Positions 42,699 to 58,500 of a DNA stretch of 64,000 nucleotides are shown piece after piece. Numbering within the stretch: position 1 is the first letter of the stretch; each line of letters opens with the position of its first letter. The notes below the pieces were generated by a model. That model did no database searches, was not told where the DNA came from, and was given only the letters and a program-made list of their open reading frames with translations. The translations under genes and the position numbers were made by a program. The DNA lies in sequence record MG592671.1, one strand, 5' to 3'.

Positions 42699-42702
42699 GA
42701 TA

Positions 42703-42722
42703 AAAAGCCGCTAGCGGCTTTT
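42703..42722 (+). terminator. Terminator
   Basis: AAAAGCCGC-TA-GCGGCTTTT. Confidence 0.75.
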
Positions 42723-42739
42723 ATTTTGGGGTTAGATAA

Positions 42740-42769
42740 TGTTACAGCCCTAAAATTAAATGTTATAAT
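42740..42769 (+). promoter_or_regulatory. Phage promoter
   Basis: TGTTACA-N14-TGTTATAAT. Confidence 0.75.
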
Positions 42770-42825
42770 AAAAAGTAAGCAAAACAAACTAACAAGTTTT
42801 TAAAATAAACAAAAGGAAAGCGCAA

Positions 42826-43107
42826 ATGGCAAAAGATAATTCTCGTCAGGCTGCAATGAATAACTCAGAACGTGTTGCATCGCTTAAATCCCTGCGAAAA
42901 GCTGGTGTTATCGATCGAGCTACTTTTCGAATGATTGCAAAGCAGAAAGGCCTAAGTTGTGCTCGCACGCCAATCACTAACACTGGCGGTAAAGATGGTG
43001 GTCATCGTGTTCCAGAAATGCCTAAGTTTTTAGATGTGGACGGCAAAGAAGACAACACCCGTTGGGTGAGTGTTGGCTCTCAGCCAGCAGTGCGTTTCAC
43101 TAAGTAA
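42826..43107 (+). CDS. Small basic protein
   Basis: SD AAGGA; co-transcribed with the downstream structured RNA. Confidence 0.7.
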   Translation: MAKDNSRQAAMNNSERVASLKSLRKAGVIDRATFRMIAKQKGLSCARTPITNTGGKDGGHRVPEMPKFLDVDGKEDNTRWVSVGSQPAVRFTK

Positions 43108-43719
43108 TACTGATAGTGCTTGGAGTTAAATCCCAGGCATTACTAGAACTGGTTCTAATCACCAGTAGAGGCTCGAGACTCTAAAACGTTAGCAGCTCCT
43201 CCTACTGTGAGGCTTAAGGTGAAACTGAAAAGTCTCTCAGTAAGATACAGGACGTAGTAAAAGTACGAAGTGTAACAGAATGCGCAGTCTGATCAATAAG
43301 AGAGGTTGCTATAGCTGCGGACTGGTATAACTGGTATATTCTAGTAATAGATATATTAGATCAGTTTAGTGGCAACGTGGGTTCGACTCCCATGTGAGAT
43401 CACACTAAGTATTAGAGGAGATACGTCGCTCCTAGTGTTGACGGCATAACTTACTTGCCAGAGCTGAATAAATGTCATGTAGTACCGCTGTCCGAAAGGA
43501 CAGCACATTAACAGAATTTTATAAATATCATTGTACTTAATTAAAAGAATTTAAAACAAGGAAATTGTCGATGCACGTATCAGTTACTAAATCTAGTTCG
43601 TTTAGTAAGGGAACTAAATGGTTCTCCTGGATACTAGTGCCTGAAAATTGTCGACTGATAGCATAACCTCCTTTTTGTTTTGCGCTATTAAGCCGATGAT
43701 TGTTTCATCGGCTTATTTT
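43108..43719 (+). ncRNA. Large (~610 nt) structured non-coding region with a T-arm, ending in a terminator
   Basis: No ORF in the track; more than 12 helices including 10-bp long-range pairs, a GAAA tetraloop and GGGTTCGACTCCC. Confidence 0.7.
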
Positions 43720-43733
43720 ATGACTTGAATAAA

Positions 43734-43772
43734 TGCAATGCACCCTACATAATATGTTATAATAATATGTAG
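43734..43772 (+). promoter_or_regulatory. Phage promoter inside an inverted repeat
   Basis: TGCAATG-N14-TGTTATAAT; CTACATA/TATGTAG. Confidence 0.65.
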
Positions 43773-43796
43773 ACGTTAACTAAGTAGGTATTAGCA

Positions 43797-44507
43797 ATGA
43801 GCACAGAGATTAGTGAATTCCCTTACGTTAGACCAGAGCAGCGCGTGTCAGCACATTTTGCTAAGAACTGGACATTTAATTTTCCCTATCGTTCAGCTGG
43901 GATGTTCAACTATGGATCTAAAGTTTATGGCAACAAGAAGCCAAGCGATATTGACGTAATTGCTGTATTTGTTGGTAATGTTGATTATTGCGAACAACAT
44001 AAAGTTGAAGATATAAACAACATCGGCACTTTCATCGACGTCACGTTGTATAGTGAAAAAACCTTCCTAGAGAAAGTTAACGAACACGAGATTTCAATAT
44101 TAGAATGTGTGTTTGCCAAAAAGAAAAATATATTAGTTCCGATAAGTTTGTACTTAGAACGACAACTGAAGCATTTTGTAATTGACAAGTCTACTCTACG
44201 TAGAGCAATTTCCAAGAAAGCAAGTAACTCTTATGTAAAAGCTAAGAAAAAACTTTTAGTTGAAGCGGACTACGATTTGGAATGTTCGCTGAAAAGCTTA
44301 TGGCATTCGATTCGTATTTTAGACTTTGGTTCACAGCTTGCTGAATCAAGCACTATCGACGAATTTGATTCAGTTAATTGGATATTTAAAGATATACTAG
44401 ATACATATATCAGCACAGAGTGTAACTGGGAAGAGATTCATAAAAAGTATAAGCCAATTTATAATGAGTTTGCAAGTACATTTCGTGAAACTTGTCCAAA
44501 GGAATAA
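43797..44507 (+). CDS. Pol-beta-type nucleotidyltransferase
   Basis: YGSKVYG...SDIDVIAV. Confidence 0.75.
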   Translation: MSTEISEFPYVRPEQRVSAHFAKNWTFNFPYRSAGMFNYGSKVYGNKKPSDIDVIAVFVGNVDYCEQHKVEDINNIGTFIDVTLYSEKTFLEKVNEHEISILECVFAKKKNILVPISLYLERQLKHFVIDKSTLRRAISKKASNSYVKAKKKLLVEADYDLECSLKSLWHSIRILDFGSQLAESSTIDEFDSVNWIFKDILDTYISTECNWEEIHKKYKPIYNEFASTFRETCPKE

Positions 44508-45930: not shown

Positions 45931-45942
45931 TAATCTACGTAC

Positions 45943-46031
45943 AGGGAATGTTCTTGTCAGCGGTCTCCAAAACCGTCGAGAATAAACAGACTTGTGGTGC
46001 TCTAGGGGTTCGATTCCTCCATTCCCTGCCA
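45943..46031 (+). tRNA. Atypical tRNA-Trp(CCA) lacking a normal D-arm
   Basis: Acceptor AGGGAAT/ATTCCCT-G-CCA, loop CTCCAAA, T-loop TTCGATT; only ~10 nt where the D-arm should be. Confidence 0.65.
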
Positions 46032-46047
46032 AATTTTATAAGATATT

Positions 46048-47223: not shown

Positions 47224-47342
47224 GGGCTCATGGCGAAGCGGGATCGCGATTTAGTTTAGTACCTAGATCTAGGAGTACGCATCCGCAACACTCTTAACCG
47301 GCATGATCGGTGACGTTGGTTCGAATCCAACTGAGTCCACTA
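47224..47342 (+). ncRNA. tRNA-like RNA with G3.U70/A73 and a replaced anticodon arm
   Basis: GGGCTCA/TGAGTCC-A-CTA, D-arm and T-arm present. Confidence 0.65.
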
Positions 47343-47349
47343 TTAACTT

Positions 47350-47568
47350 GTCGAGCTGGAAAACAAAGCCTCTGAAACTGTAAAGCCTCCACAAGGTTAA
47401 CAGATTGTAGAAGATTCGTTATACTAAGAGAATCAGGGGAGATAATGTTTGGTCAGAGTAACAAATAGATATGGAATATTAGAGGAAAAGCTAGTAGACA
47501 GTGGAACTACTTGCAGAACTCTTTTAAGACGTTGAAACTACGGGGTTCGATTCCTCGTCTCGGCACAA
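47350..47568 (+). ncRNA. 219-nt RNA with tRNA-like termini
   Basis: GTCGAG/CTCGGC-A-CAA; T-arm CGGGG-TTCGATT-CCTCG. Confidence 0.55.
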
Positions 47569-47572
47569 AAAA

Positions 47573-47664
47573 GGAATACAATCGAAAAAGGGCTTGTAGT
47601 AGGCACTGAGACCCAGAAGCCCTGAAATACCCATTCAGATCGTCTGTAAGCAGTGCTGTATTCC
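47573..47664 (+). ncRNA. 92-nt pseudoknotted RNA element
   Basis: GGAATACA/TGTATTCC, AGGGCTT/AAGCCCT, GCACTG/CAGTGC. Confidence 0.55.
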
Positions 47665-47674
47665 TATTAACTAT

Positions 47675-47969
47675 GCCCCTGATGTTCAATACTTGAATAA
47701 GGGAATCCCTGTAAGGCTGGAGTCACCCGGAGAGACAGATTACGATACTATATCACTCACTAATACACTGGATCCAGATCGCGTGTTCGTGACTGTGACG
47801 GTAGTATAGTACGTGTCGTAAAGAGATGATTCCTGTGATACGGTATAAGCTGGTGTAGAACTCGCTCGTGAAGGTAGACTGAAAGCGGACCAAGTGTGAC
47901 TACTTGGCAAAATCCAGGAGTATGTTGAGACTATGAGTTGGGTGGTTCGATTCCACGCCAGGGGCAACA
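47675..47969 (+). ncRNA. ~295-nt RNA with tRNA-like termini
   Basis: GCCCCTG/CAGGGGC-A, T-arm GTGG-TTCGATT-CCAC, internal helices. Confidence 0.65.
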
Positions 47970-48032
47970 ATTCAGGATAACGCAAACGCATTATCCTCAT
48001 TAATATGTGTTAATATAATACAACAACATTAT

Positions 48033-48103
48033 CCCCGTTCCCTAACGTGACACTACAGAAATAATAGAGTTGCTGGACGTTCGAATCGTCAAGCGGGGTC
48101 TAA
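48033..48103 (+). pseudogene. Degenerate tRNA-like element
   Basis: CCCCGTT/AGCGGGG and GACG-TTCGAAT-CGTC only. Confidence 0.45.
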
Positions 48104-48131
48104 TCATCCTTAATATCAAAGGTACTTCATA

Positions 48132-49237: not shown

Positions 49238-49460
49238 CGGGATATACTGAAAAGGGCATCTCCGAAGCTATCATCCTAGGAAATGTGGCGATCATTGTTG
49301 TCGGTTATTAGGTATATTCAAGTCTACTCCGAAAGCACGGGCTGACGCGGGAGCGTTGGGCGAAGTAGAGGTTCAATTCCTCTAGCACACTTGATAACAA
49401 ATCGGGAGAGTGTGTTCTGGGTGAAATATTAGGGTGCGAGTCCCTTAAGTAGACGCCCGT
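49237..49460 (+). ncRNA. 224-nt structured RNA with a permuted tRNA-like domain
   Basis: T-arm followed by GCACACT/AGTGTGT hairpin; closed by GTCTACT/AGTAGAC and ACGGG/CCCGT. Confidence 0.6.
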
Positions 49461-52540: not shown

Positions 52541-52763
52541 TGAATACTTTGAATACCTGCATGATCTACAAAAGCAGGGATATATGATATACGATAATTC
52601 TCGTATGGTTCAGGACTTTATCTCAATTGAAAAAATTGATGGAGTATGGAGGTATTTTTATCACGAAGACACTGAAGGTGAAATAGACTGTGATATGGAT
52701 GGATGCTTTACTGTATACAAGGATGTCACTGCTGAAGTAAAGCAATCAACTACAATGTTATAA
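52530..52763 (+). CDS. hypothetical protein
   Basis: ORF. Confidence 0.6.
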   Translation: MTNDEYFEYLHDLQKQGYMIYDNSRMVQDFISIEKIDGVWRYFYHEDTEGEIDCDMDGCFTVYKDVTAEVKQSTTML

Positions 52764-52797: not shown

Positions 52798-53817
52798 ATG
52801 AAACATTATACTTATTGGATTATAGATACTGTAAATGCTATGTATTACCACGGTGTTCATAGCGATAATGATCCAGAAAATATCCATCACTACTCTGGGT
52901 CTTCTAAGTCACTGACATCAGCTATTCAACAATACGGAATATCAAATTTTATAAAGAGAGTTGAGCGTTATTTTGATACTAGGGAAGCAGCTAATAAGTG
53001 GGAAGCAACAGTACATAAGCGATTAGATGTAAAAAACCATAATAAATTTTATAACAATAATAATGCATCAGAAGATTTTACTGCCTACAATAAAGTTACA
53101 GTTAGAGATACAAGCGGTAATATATTTTCGGTAGATAAAAATGACAAAAGATATATTAGTGGTGAACTTGTTCATAATAATTTAGGTAAGCACATTGTAA
53201 TTGATTCAAATGGTGATGCGTTTAAAATATTAGCTAGTGATGAAAGATTTGTAAGTGGGGAGCTAAAAGACAGATTATCAGGAAAAGTTATCGTCAAAGA
53301 CGAAAACGATAATAATATTTTAGTAGAAACTACAGATACAAAATATTTAAGAGGTGAATACACCCACATTAATGCTGGTGTGGTAACAGTTAAGGATACA
53401 AACGGAAATACTATGCGGGTTTCAACAGACGATCCTAGATATATTTCAGGAGAGCTTGTTCATCTAACCACAGGGCGTGTGACTGTAAAAGATAAAGCAG
53501 GAAATCACATACAAGTAGACATTGATGATCCAAGAATTGATAATGGCGAGTTTACATATCTACAAGTTGGTAAAGTTCCAGTCAAAGATGAGAATGGTAC
53601 TATATTCCAAGTTGATGCCACTGACCCTAGATATATTTCAGGGGAATTAACACATCATCTTAAGGGGATTTCCAATAGTCACAAAGATAGAATTTGGATA
53701 ACTAATCCTATATTAAAGAAGAACAAGCGCGTTCTTAAAGATGATTTGGATTCTTGGTTACTGAAATCTGATTGGACTAAAGGTCGTAAAACTTACGCAA
53801 AAATAAAGGAATTATAA
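52798..53817 (+). mobile_element. GIY-YIG (Seg-like) homing endonuclease with six ~32-aa repeats
   Basis: HYTYWI...YYHGVH...YSGS; repeats VKD--G----V---DPRY-SGEL; own promoter at 52756. Confidence 0.8.
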
Positions 53818-55067
53818 TGTCTAAAGAAATAAAGAATGTAATAGTACAGCATTATGCTGGTAGCATATCTTATGGCACATCACTTCCTACGAGTGATACT
53901 GATATCCGCGGTATCTTCTGTGCTGGTGAAGAAAATATACGTACGCCGTTCTTTCCTATCCGTGAACAAACACTAGAAGATGAAGAAGATGGTAAGCTAT
54001 ATGAGCTTAGTAATTTCCTTAAGTTATACACTGATGGTAACCCGAATATCCTAGAATCTCTATGGGTAGATGATAGACACATCATTGAAGGTTCAGAAGC
54101 ATACGATATTCTTACTGAACACAGGCAAACTCTGCTGTCTAAAAAGGTTGCATTCACTTATAGCGGCTACGCTATTTCGCAACTACATCGTATCAAAGGC
54201 CACAACAAGTACATCAATAACCCAGCTAAAGAGACGCCACCACGTCAAATTGACTTTGTGAAGCTAGTTCATAACTTTACAGACAAAAAGATCTTTAAGA
54301 TCAATATGGAAGATATCCAAAACGGATACAGGTTAATACCATACGGTGGTGATTTATTTGGTGTTTATGAATCCCCGGGTTCCCAAACATTCGATCACTT
54401 GTTCACATTGAACACTAATTGTGATGCAGATCTAAGTGGCTTCTACACAAAGACTCGAACATTCACAGATAAGATAGCTGGATTCATTACAGGTAATCCT
54501 GATTTTGGAACACGCAAACTCCCACTGTTCATTGTATCGTTTAACCGTGAAGGTTACAAGAAATCAAAAGAGCATTGGAAATCTTACTGGAGCTGGAAGC
54601 GTAATCGTAACGAAGCACGACGTTTGCTTGAAGAAGAAAACGGATACGATACAAAACACGCTCAACATTTGGTAAGACTGCTGAATATGGCTGAAGAAAT
54701 CCTAACTGATGGTATAGTAAAAGTGTTCCGCCCTGATCGAGAATTATTATTAGATATTCGACATGGTAAGTTCTCTTTTGATGAGCTTATGGAAATGGTT
54801 GAAGGTAAGGATGAATACATCCGTGGAGAGTTGTACAAGAAATCTCCGCTACCAAAAGCACCTGATATCAAACTAGCTTCTAAAGTTCTCATAGATGCTC
54901 AAGATTGTTTCTGGAAAGAGCCAACAAAAGAAAAGCGTATTCAGAAAGCCAAAGATCGCATGTTTGATCGTCATCAAAAAGAAGAAGATCGCCGTGAAGC
55001 ACGTTTCTGTGAAAACATGGAACGACTACAAGAAAATCTGAAAGGTGATGATAATGAATCAGAATAG
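53817..55067 (+). CDS. RlaP-like (Nuc-transf) Pol-beta nucleotidyltransferase
   Basis: AGSISYGTSLPTSDTDIRGIF, GNPNILE, YDTKHAQHLVRL. Confidence 0.85.
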   Translation: MSKEIKNVIVQHYAGSISYGTSLPTSDTDIRGIFCAGEENIRTPFFPIREQTLEDEEDGKLYELSNFLKLYTDGNPNILESLWVDDRHIIEGSEAYDILTEHRQTLLSKKVAFTYSGYAISQLHRIKGHNKYINNPAKETPPRQIDFVKLVHNFTDKKIFKINMEDIQNGYRLIPYGGDLFGVYESPGSQTFDHLFTLNTNCDADLSGFYTKTRTFTDKIAGFITGNPDFGTRKLPLFIVSFNREGYKKSKEHWKSYWSWKRNRNEARRLLEEENGYDTKHAQHLVRLLNMAEEILTDGIVKVFRPDRELLLDIRHGKFSFDELMEMVEGKDEYIRGELYKKSPLPKAPDIKLASKVLIDAQDCFWKEPTKEKRIQKAKDRMFDRHQKEEDRREARFCENMERLQENLKGDDNESE

Positions 55068-56571: not shown

Positions 56572-56665
56572 ACACATGACAACAGAGTTATTTGGTTCAA
56601 ATCCAGGCTTGGCGGGTAAGACTGCATTGAAGCTTATTATTGGTATAAAGCACTACGTTATGTGT
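56572..56665 (+). ncRNA. 94-nt circularly permuted tRNA mimic (YrlA-like topology)
   Basis: Terminal stem ACACATGAC/GTTATGTGT; the T-arm precedes the D-arm. Confidence 0.55.
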
Positions 56666-57606: not shown

Positions 57607-57612
57607 ACTAAT

Positions 57613-57785
57613 TTAAGCAGCAACTCGTGGTAGGGGAATGTAGACCCGCCTTGGGGAATCTAGGAGAGCTCAGAGGATACTTGCGGCACAGTTGAAGAGT
57701 GTTCCCTAATTCACGGGACGTGTAGCCTTAATGGCGAAGTGTAGACTGTTACTGGTTCAAGTCCAGTCCATCGAACGCTGCTTAA
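57613..57785 (+). ncRNA. tRNA-Leu-like RNA, copy 1 (expanded anticodon domain, extended acceptor)
   Basis: TTAAGCAGC/GCTGCTTAA; T-arm ACTGG-TTCAAGT-CCAGT. Confidence 0.6.
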
Positions 57786-57789
57786 TAAA

Positions 57790-57950
57790 ATGAAATACAG
57801 CAACTCGTTGTGGTGAAACTGGTAGACGCGCCTGGTTGGTACCTGCGTTGACTACCCCTGTAAAAAAAGGGGTCATAGACAATGGGACGCCCGGGATCCT
57901 TGTGAAAGGGGAGTGCAGGTTCGAGTCCTGTCTTCGAACGCTGTGTTCAT
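57790..57950 (+). ncRNA. tRNA-Leu-like RNA, copy 2
   Basis: D-arm GTGGTGAAACTGGTAGACGCG, V-arm, T-arm GCAGG-TTCGAGT-CCTGT; shares terminal motifs with copy 1. Confidence 0.65.
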
Positions 57951-57953
57951 ACT

Positions 57954-58063
57954 TGAGAAGATCATAAACAAAATTTGGTACGCGCTTCAGTTGTGAGGTT
58001 CAATTCCTCGAGGTTCTAGGTGACCAACGTCGACGTAGAGGTTCGAATCCTCCTTTTCAACCA
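57954..58063 (+). ncRNA. 110-nt CCA-ending tRNA-like RNA with two T-loops
   Basis: TGAGAAG/CTTTTCA-A-CCA. Confidence 0.6.
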
Positions 58064-58077
58064 AAAAATAATAGGAT

Positions 58078-58500
58078 ATGAGTATGAATCTTAATGAAAT
58101 CGAATTAGTCCCTAAAACTAAAACATTTTATGTTCGTTATACATCCAATCAGACTGGCGTGTATAAAATTGTTGGTACTTCTGAAGAAACATTTAAAAAT
58201 ATTCTTGTTGAACAGCACACAAAAATGCATAGAGCTAAACGATACGTTGATGAGTATCAAACAGAAGTTAACACTGCTCAACGCAAAATGAATAAACTTC
58301 GTGATGATTGTGATTTCACACATTACTACAATCAAGCACAGGATGATCGTAGTAACTATGAATACTACCTGGATCAACAAATGCCAAAATTCAAAAAGGC
58401 AGAAAAAGAATTCAATTTCTATTTTGATCAGATTAATCCAGATGCTGGCGAGTATATTACGCTGATGATGTGTTATGACGCAGAGTGGGTTTTTGAATGA
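58078..58500 (+). CDS. Coiled-coil hypothetical protein
   Basis: SD AGGA. Confidence 0.7.
   Translation: MSMNLNEIELVPKTKTFYVRYTSNQTGVYKIVGTSEETFKNILVEQHTKMHRAKRYVDEYQTEVNTAQRKMNKLRDDCDFTHYYNQAQDDRSNYEYYLDQQMPKFKKAEKEFNFYFDQINPDAGEYITLMMCYDAEWVFE

Follow-up and report, generated by a model that had tools for sequence, protein, structure and literature searches.

The locus studied here belongs to Vibrio phage 2.275.O._10N.286.54.E11 (further referred to as phage 2.275.O), a jumbo phage with a genome of 348,911 bp (MG592671.1). The window, that is, the whole stretch of DNA analysed, comprises 64,000 nt of this record; window positions, used throughout, equal the record positions minus 124,000. 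We consider the 612 nt at 43108–43719, flanked by an open reading frame (ORF) encoding a 93-aa protein and by the gene of a 236-aa nucleotidyltransferase (NTase). GenBank annotates no gene there. A preliminary description of the DNA had presented the whole interval as one ornate, pseudoknotted non-coding RNA of about 610 nt with an embedded tRNA elbow. The 612 nt are two things and not one RNA: a non-coding insert of about 400 nt (43108–43505, referred to as the segment) and a small-gene cassette at the 3’-end (43506–43719). The segment is neither a GOLLD/ROOL-class RNA, nor a tmRNA, nor a decodable tRNA. The features of the locus are listed in Table 1.

Genes of the interval and its relatives

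The sequence contains, in this order, a promoter, the 93-aa gene, the segment, a micro-ORF and a terminator, and both the upstream promoter and the downstream terminator of the preliminary description are real. The promoter includes the string ATGTTATAAT, of which the window holds nine exact copies on the + strand and ten over both strands. Exact copies precede the genes of PhoH (41266), the 93-aa protein (42760) and the NTase (43754), as well as tRNA-Met (58598) and tRNA-Tyr (59779), being located 40–56 nt 5’ of the genes and of these tRNAs. Further exact sites on the + strand are found at 52755, 59936 and 16884, and the number of matches with one mismatch allowed is 32 versus 15.8 expected. 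Since ATGTTATAAT recurs exactly upstream of genes and tRNAs, it is a genuine promoter type of phage 2.275.O, probably the class dependent on the host sigma70.

Neither a promoter nor a terminator was detected inside 43108–43505, and 43108–43719 holds no copy of ATGTTATAAT. As the segment has no promoter of its own, it would be transcribed from the promoter of the 93-aa gene, within a predicted transcript of about 950 nt with its 3’-end at the terminator. Short contigs 100% identical to phage 2.275.O (L010–L013) are present in the Logan assemblies of runs SRR8667466–SRR8667480. Two Logan contigs of this phage cover the whole of 43108–43719; one begins at 43534, directly past the TATAAATA box, and another at 43714, where the terminator ends. 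Should the runs represent RNA-seq of infected cells, the contigs would show transcription of the segment.

The promoter-driven small gene upstream is real as well. A related contig (L005) encodes a 91-aa homologue of the 93-aa protein with 49% identity and an invariant GxIDRATFRMI block, and the protein matches phrog_24119 with E 2e-7.

The 3’ cassette consists of a leader, a ribosome-binding site (RBS), a 31-codon ORF and the terminator. It aligns with a Tara Oceans contig (L004; L143 is identical) that encodes the closest relatives found of the NTase (65% identity) and PhoH (70%). The leader, the AAGGAAA RBS, the ATG, the short frame without gaps, the terminator and the NTase promoter are all kept in this contig. 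The ungapped alignment of the micro-ORF (31 codons versus 27 in the relative) contains seven identities (M, K, G, F, S, V, P), and the exchanges V/I, K/R, F/Y, W/Y, I/L and L/I form a protein-like pattern. As judged from the alignment, the frame at 43571–43666 probably encodes a micro-protein that annotation has overlooked. A conserved hairpin over the K-G...F-S codons (GGAAC/GUUCU versus GGAAAUA/UAUUUCU in the two sequences available) may contribute to the conservation. The interval had been called ORF-free, which does not agree with a frame that has an RBS and a counterpart in L004/L143 of the same position and length class, differing by conservative substitutions. The three-way junction placed at about 43565–43657 falls inside this frame, and with the 3’ ~210 nt assigned to the cassette, about 400 nt are left of the proposed RNA.

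The position of the segment could suggest a long structured cis-regulatory leader of the 31-codon ORF, controlling its translation or stability: both belong to the same transcription unit, and the segment is directly upstream of the conserved leader and RBS. However, the Tara relative has the same micro-ORF cassette with a promoter about 100 nt upstream and without the segment, and no Rfam riboswitch or leader matches it. We regard such a function as improbable.

The syntenic comparison included contigs L004, L005, L143, L144 and L145, representing four lineages. In L005, the 91-aa gene is followed by a terminator and then by the NTase gene. L004/L143 has PhoH, the micro-ORF cassette and the NTase gene; in L144, an unrelated 104-aa gene occupies the place between PhoH and the NTase gene, and in L145, PhoH is followed by another gene. 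The segment is absent from all of them. The PhoH-to-NTase interval (42699–43796) is a hypervariable slot of promoter-gene-terminator cassettes differing by lineage; where a terminator and a promoter would join two such cassettes, phage 2.275.O has the segment instead. The preliminary description had itself named lack of conservation as an argument against its proposal, and this is what was observed.

In a BLAST search against 50,697 phage records, the segment retrieved only itself even at E ≤ 10, and no homologues were found in plasmids and E. coli. Scans of IMG/VR with four DNA patterns derived from the segment and scans of JGI metagenomes yielded chance matches only (a tRNA-Trp beside a coding region, a coding region, and an antisense site within a bacterial ORF). 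The neighbouring proteins are rare as well: a search of IMG/VR gave no relatives for the NTase, the 93-aa protein or PhoH, and few were present among 5.8 billion proteins. By PhoH similarity, the closest cultured kin are the jumbo phages of the 121Q, GAP32 and CBB group, at about 45% identity.

Table 1. Positions of the features in the window (RBS, ribosome-binding site; MFE, minimum free energy).
Feature	Position	Strand	Details
Extended −10 promoter	42741–42769	+	GTTACA, 17-nt spacer, TG-TATAAT; includes the recurrent ATGTTATAAT
93-aa protein gene	42826–43107	+	Stop codon abuts the non-coding segment; homologue in a relative
Non-coding segment	43108–43505	+	GC-enriched, structured on the sense strand; core of the finding; specific to phage 2.275.O
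5’ hairpin	43116–43140	+	GUGCUUGG / CCAGGCAU; MFE helix; competes with helix 1 of the preliminary description
Long irregular hairpin	43314–43373	+	Nested fold; 5’ arm holds ACTGGTATA twice
tRNA-type T-arm	43375–43395	+	GTGGG-TTCGACT-CCCAT; 5–7-bp stem; loop UUCGACU; no encoded CCA
GAAA-tetraloop hairpin	43487–43504	+	7-bp stem; no T-run behind it, hence no terminator
Conserved leader	43506–43570	+	ATTAACA..TATAAATAT.ATTGTA..CTTAATTAAAA; RBS AAGGAAA at 43558–43564; from the alignment with L004
31-codon ORF	43571–43666	+	MHVSVTKSSSFSKGTKWFSWILVPENCRLIA; own RBS; no GenBank annotation
Intrinsic terminator	43689–43715	+	11-bp stem, then T-run; ends the transcription unit; kept in L004
Pol-beta-type nucleotidyltransferase gene, 236 aa	43797–44507	+	Neighbour, outside the RNA; own ATGTTATAAT promoter at 43754–43763
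Orphan T-arms, first group	43377–43393, 46004–46020, 47541–47557, 47941–47957, 48075–48091, 49367–49383	+	Intergenic
Orphan T-arms, second group	56591–56607, 57751–57767, 57915–57931, 57994–58010, 58037–58053	+	Intergenic

Fold of the segment and comparison with known RNA families

On the + strand, none of the ORFs in the segment exceeds 30 aa. Its origin from a protein pseudogene was rejected: each of the three + frames has 6–9 stops, and the longest open stretch on either strand is shorter than 50 aa. The GC content of the segment is 43%, versus 37.5% in the window and 32% in the adjacent micro-ORF cassette.

The 411-nt core has a folding z-score of −3.37 on the sense strand versus −0.66 on the antisense strand (100 shuffles), and the sense-strand fold is 21–22 kcal/mol better than in dinucleotide shuffles. 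This asymmetry argues for structure in the transcript. The z-score of the whole 612 nt is −5.6, calculated with 20 shuffles only. Among 142 windows of the same size from the genome, the core is at the 2nd percentile by energy gain and only at the 10th by z-score, because the genome windows are themselves shifted (mean z −1.2, sd 1.6). In 300-nt windows over the segment, z-scores range from −1.3 to −2.4, which is unremarkable. The stability of the fold is therefore moderate, and the earlier claim of a structured non-coding stretch behind a small gene with its own promoter is borne out for about 400 nt, with the structure on the sense strand.

Two hairpins are well supported. The GCTGTCC-GAAA-GGACAGC hairpin pairs with probability 1.0, and pair probabilities in the T-arm GTGGG-TTCGACT-CCCAT are 0.97–0.98. 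The other helices read in the preliminary description consist of segments that are complementary and located where it had placed them; the long-range pairing itself does not hold, its probability in the nested ensemble being about 0. The energy cost of enforcing the pairs is +6.4 kcal/mol for ATTACTAGAA/TTCTAGTAAT, +9.4 kcal/mol for CTGATCAATA/TATTAGATCAG, +2.6 kcal/mol for GTTGCTA/TGGCAAC, and +10.6 kcal/mol for GAGACT/AGTCTC. The helices cross one another and could coexist only as pseudoknots; 15% of the shuffled 612-nt sequences contain a perfect stem of at least 10 bp. The ‘D-loop-like ACTGGT repeats’ at 43321–43335 are really an exact 9-nt tandem duplication of ACTGGTATA at 43321–43338. 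Apart from this duplication, no D-loop partner of the T-arm was found, and thus the tRNA ‘elbow’ is not retained.

Known families were searched for with 4227 covariance models of Rfam 15, the whole window being scanned at gathering score and the region 42950–43850 at E ≤ 10. Within 43108–43719, there was no match at gathering score to any family, GOLLD, ROOL, tmRNA and tRNA included. GOLLD (RF02032, a model of the conserved 3’ core with a gathering score of 150 bits) did not score in the region even at E ≤ 10, nor did ROOL, OLE, HEARO, raiA, RNase P, group I/II introns and riboswitches; the supposed GOLLD/ROOL kinship is thus not supported. In roseophage DSS3_MAL1, the same tool finds GOLLD with an embedded tRNA at 160.5 bits as well as a permuted tmRNA, and therefore the negative result at 43108–43719 is meaningful. 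Sub-threshold matches at E ≤ 10 to rli61, snoR9, mir-1271 and RAGATH-9 are probably due to chance. The only relevant one is that of a tmRNA model to 18 nt on the T-arm, with 12 bits against a gathering score of 47.

A new large, ornate, pseudoknotted RNA of the GOLLD/ROOL kind, 400–610 nt long and with an embedded tRNA-like elbow, would still fit the phage tRNA-cluster context; DSS3_MAL1 carries GOLLD with a tRNA in a similar RNA-plus-NTase island. GOLLD is, like the segment, phage-borne and next to tRNA genes, and the DSS3_MAL1 island is of the same type. The 10-bp long-range complementarity, the crossing helices and the z-score of the 612 nt also point in this direction. However, apart from the missing family signal and the loss of the 3’ third to a conserved ORF cassette, the helices are at the chance level and thermodynamically disfavoured. 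Deep conservation is the defining property of known ornate RNAs, whereas the segment is unconserved and missing in relatives; nothing of the conserved GOLLD core is present in it, and it is about half the size of GOLLD. We consider such an RNA very unlikely. The picture is corrected to one without a 610-nt ornate RNA and without evidence for a pseudoknot, and with a hidden conserved micro-ORF.

The tRNA model (RF00005, threshold 29 bits) has no match at E ≤ 10 on 42950–43850, and ARAGORN with default settings predicts neither tRNA nor tmRNA in the segment; no tmRNA appears at 90% thresholds either. At the 70% threshold, ARAGORN draws 43287–43401 as a tRNA-like fold with a 3-bp D-stem and a 37-nt insert (‘intron’) in the anticodon loop. 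Its acceptor-like pairing, GUCUGAU (43287–43293) with GUGAGAU (43394–43400), includes one G.G mismatch and two G.U pairs. An intron-containing tRNA was rejected, as the only solution of ARAGORN at default thresholds with introns allowed pairs the T-arm with a 5’ half from inside PhoH, leaving a 1191-nt ‘intron’, and is spurious.

The segment was also compared with the E. coli ssrA gene and three Vibrio ssrA genes. The string CAUGUAGUACC(G) = CATGTAGTACC(G) at 43476–43487 is identical to a conserved 3’ segment of gamma-proteobacterial tmRNA, in E. coli and Vibrio alike. Other short matches are TAGCAGCT at the tag end, GATCAATAAGAGA and AGATC.ACTAAG, all out of order. A degenerate or rearranged element derived from ssrA would account for these matches and for the only relevant Rfam signal. 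It would also account for the layout: acceptor, linker, helix and T-arm without a D-stem resemble the tRNA-like domain of tmRNA (RF00023, RF01849, RF04321), where a helix also directly precedes the T-arm. However, the shared 11–12-nt motif follows the T-arm in the segment instead of preceding it, the matches are not collinear, and the summed local scores against ssrA are 108 versus 96.5 ± 6.5 in shuffles (p ~0.05), with Vibrio no better than E. coli. The acceptor of tmRNA, with G3:U70, A73 and CCA, is absent: the best pairing contains C3-G70 as well as a G.G mismatch, and the bases behind it are C and ACA. At ARAGORN thresholds of 50–70%, the tag frames are implausible, and the TAGCAGCT match has no following stop. 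Given no alanine identity pair, no tag frame, no CCA and the negative ARAGORN result, membership in the tmRNA family was rejected. tmRNA ancestry of the segment is unproven, and of all the explanations considered we find an ssrA-derived element the least probable.

Orphan T-arms and the interpretation of the segment

The T-arm of the segment is of authentic tRNA type, as had been claimed: it has the 5-bp stem, the G53-C61 pair and the TTCRANN loop. The window contains 16 copies of the core GGTTCRANTCC, all of them on the + strand, against 0.08 expected (200-fold enrichment). Six copies are within called tRNAs; ten are orphan (43380, 46007, 47544, 47944, 49370, 56594, 57754, 57918, 57997 and 58040). 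An eleventh orphan T-arm, at 48075, has the loop TTCGAAT and the stem GGACG/CGTCA. The T-arm is not due to chance, given this excess on one strand and the fact that all ten orphan copies are intergenic. All eleven orphan T-arms are in intergenic gaps and are called neither by ARAGORN nor by Rfam at gathering score. Two of these gaps are long ORF-free stretches with GC content of 42–47%: 47340–48131 (790 nt) and 57608–58084 (477 nt, four T-arms). Outside the T-arm, the orphan loci have a weak tRNA score or none, and the T-arm itself is intact. Comparison of the segment with the other gaps that contain T-arms, and with the tRNA-like gene at 47224–47340, revealed no similarity beyond the T-arm.

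The tRNA-rich context of the segment noted earlier is thus confirmed, and several properties are common to the segment and the canonical tRNAs of phage 2.275.O. They share the strand and the T-arm consensus GGTTCRANTCC, and canonical tRNA genes start 4–30 nt behind ORF stops (45441→45451, 46269→46273, 60848→60859), just as the segment starts directly after the stop of the 93-aa gene. In contrast to canonical tRNAs, the segment has no tRNA-model score, no convincing acceptor, no D-arm and no encoded CCA, and a hairpin of 37–58 nt stands in place of the anticodon arm. CCA is encoded in all eight canonical tRNAs checked (N-CCA) and is missing from most orphans.

We tentatively interpret the segment as an RNA module, tRNA-like or tRNA-derived, that is specific to this lineage. 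It would be transcribed together with the 93-aa gene and probably undergoes processing of the tRNA kind; we put this account ahead of the others, at somewhat less than an even chance. The module would have been inserted directly after the 93-aa stop, a position taken by tRNA genes elsewhere in the phage, and would be one of at least ten non-canonical T-arm RNAs in a tRNA/RNA-repair island. The T-arm, together with the weak acceptor-like pairing or stacked on GUUGCUA/UGGCAAC, could serve as a handle for the tRNA-processing machinery. Cleavage of the RNase P type at the 5’-end, trimming at the 3’-end and possibly addition of 3’ nucleotides would then cut the polycistronic RNA, uncoupling the two ORFs and releasing a stable tRNA-like fragment. 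This account is favoured by the non-random, intact T-arm, the placement behind an ORF stop, the lack of an internal promoter or terminator, the sense-strand structure and the raised GC content, and also by the surrounding RNA and tRNA island, DSS3_MAL1 having an RlaP gene in a similar arrangement (see below).

Several observations weigh against a processed module. The acceptor-like pairing GUCUGAU/GUGAGAU has a pair probability of 0 and costs +6.9 kcal/mol to force. The T-arm is followed by GTGAGAT-C-ACA and not by CCA. The exact tandem duplication within the main hairpin suggests relaxed constraint, and the z-score is at only about the 10th percentile of genome windows. Finally, the PhoH-to-NTase interval lacks the segment in 4/4 related lineages, and no collection searched contains a homologue, hence there is no support from conservation or covariation.

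The duplication, the missing CCA, the z-score unexceptional against the genome background, the lack of homologues and the interval whose content differs in each lineage are what would be expected of a non-functional relic. By this explanation, the segment is a decaying tRNA or tRNA-like remnant, or junk from cassette shuffling, that resides passively in the hypervariable slot and whose hairpins are leftovers. We consider it nearly as probable as the processed module. A perfect T-arm (7-bp stem, consensus loop) with nothing else tRNA-like is odd for uniform decay, however, and the same pattern occurs at nine other loci; moreover, the excess of structure is confined to the sense strand and the GC content is raised. 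Intact T-arms in non-tRNA sequence at ten loci are hard to explain by uniform decay, and for this reason the module is placed slightly above the relic.

Small stable RNAs are also encoded in the tRNA region of phage T4, namely species 1 and 2 (rnaC, rnaD). Like the segment, they are non-coding, situated among phage tRNA genes and co-transcribed with neighbours, and they have partial tRNA-like features open to the tRNA-processing machinery, as proposed here for the segment. The segment differs from them in being longer (about 400 nt), in having the T-arm as its sole clear tRNA feature and in not being conserved among close relatives; a relation in sequence is not expected. It is a lineage-specific form of the loosely known ‘tRNA-like RNAs in phage tRNA clusters’.

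A broader version of the module interpretation unites the segment and its nine sister orphan loci into a new class of phage RNA, in which a tRNA T-arm or minihelix is fused to idiosyncratic structured domains and serves tRNA-directed enzymes as substrate, primer or decoy. We think such a class unlikely. If it did exist, the candidate enzymes would be host tRNA-targeting defence nucleases and phage nucleotidyltransferases of the RlaP and Pol-beta types, and the fast turnover between lineages would reflect an arms race and not absence of function.

Taken alone, the locus matters little, being an unconserved spacer with the T-arm as its sole firm feature. Of broader interest are the set of orphan T-arms in the genome, the tRNA-like genes with inserts and a conserved 72-nt module described below. 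The question of why viruses carry tRNAs has been addressed with phage 2.275.O as the model (Yang et al. 2021, as cited in PMC12482277). Its non-canonical T-arm RNAs are about as many as its canonical tRNAs and are located amid enzymes of the RNA-repair type. If expression and processing of the orphan T-arm elements do take place, the tRNAs of such phages are at present counted incompletely, and a class of tRNA-mimicking RNAs would become tractable in a cultured phage-host pair.

Three further tRNA-like genes were noted in the window. Those at 47224–47340 and 57804–57939 have inserts of 31 nt and 48 nt, respectively, at the canonical position 37/38 (ARAGORN, introns allowed); such short inserts in tRNAs are uncommon for a phage of bacteria. 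The former is the ‘tRNA-OTHER’ of GenBank and scores 37.8 bits with the Rfam tRNA model; it has G3:U70 and A73 (the alanine-identity pattern), a long variable arm resembling class II, and no CCA. The third, at 45942–46033, has a perfect 7-bp acceptor (AGGGAAT/ATTCCCT), G73, an encoded CCA and no D-arm. Its long anticodon-type arm (6+4 bp) ends in the loop CUCCAAA, and its score with the tRNA-Sec model is 37 bits, under the gathering score of 47.

The RNA-repair island and a module shared with roseophages

The island encodes a PIN-PhoH protein, the 236-aa Pol-beta NTase, an RlaP NTase (53817–55064; PF10127, 43 bits) and a CYTH protein. RlaP enzymes add 1–2 nucleotides to RNA 3’-ends and restore damaged tRNA (PMC12776372). 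The family of the 236-aa NTase matches PF10127/RlaP only partially. The structural model of this NTase (pLDDT 89) shows the generic Pol-beta type, together with a helical domain; the nearest structures, ANT(4’) and Hailong HalB (TM ~0.45–0.5), do not indicate a substrate. Members of the family occur in many jumbo phages rich in tRNAs, among them phage G, Lak phages, SCTP-2 and XacN1.

In DSS3_MAL1, an RlaP gene is located behind a cluster of GOLLD, a permuted tmRNA and an unassigned RNA with a T-arm; an IMG/VR relative also has its RlaP gene behind a tmRNA and an unassigned RNA. The segment shows no similarity to the RNA island of DSS3_MAL1 or to its GOLLD. This GOLLD (160.5 bits; positions 170–633 of contig L015, which corresponds to MN602268.1 7251–10316) lacks GenBank annotation. 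An annotated tRNA-Arg is inside its variable region, and the permuted tmRNA follows directly (L015 691–1107).

A 72-nt module of the window at 47583–47654, CGAAAAAGGGCYTGTAGTAG...ARGCCCTG.GATACCCATT..GATCG, has 79% identity with positions 1501–1571 of L015 (MN602268.1) or about 1000–1070 of the IMG/VR contig L139. Its stem contains one compensatory change, GGGCUU/AAGCCC versus GGGCCU/AGGCCC. In roseophages, the permuted tmRNA and the RlaP gene flank an RNA of about 700 nt, unannotated and Rfam-negative, that includes the module. The RNA carrying the module is a candidate new conserved phage RNA.

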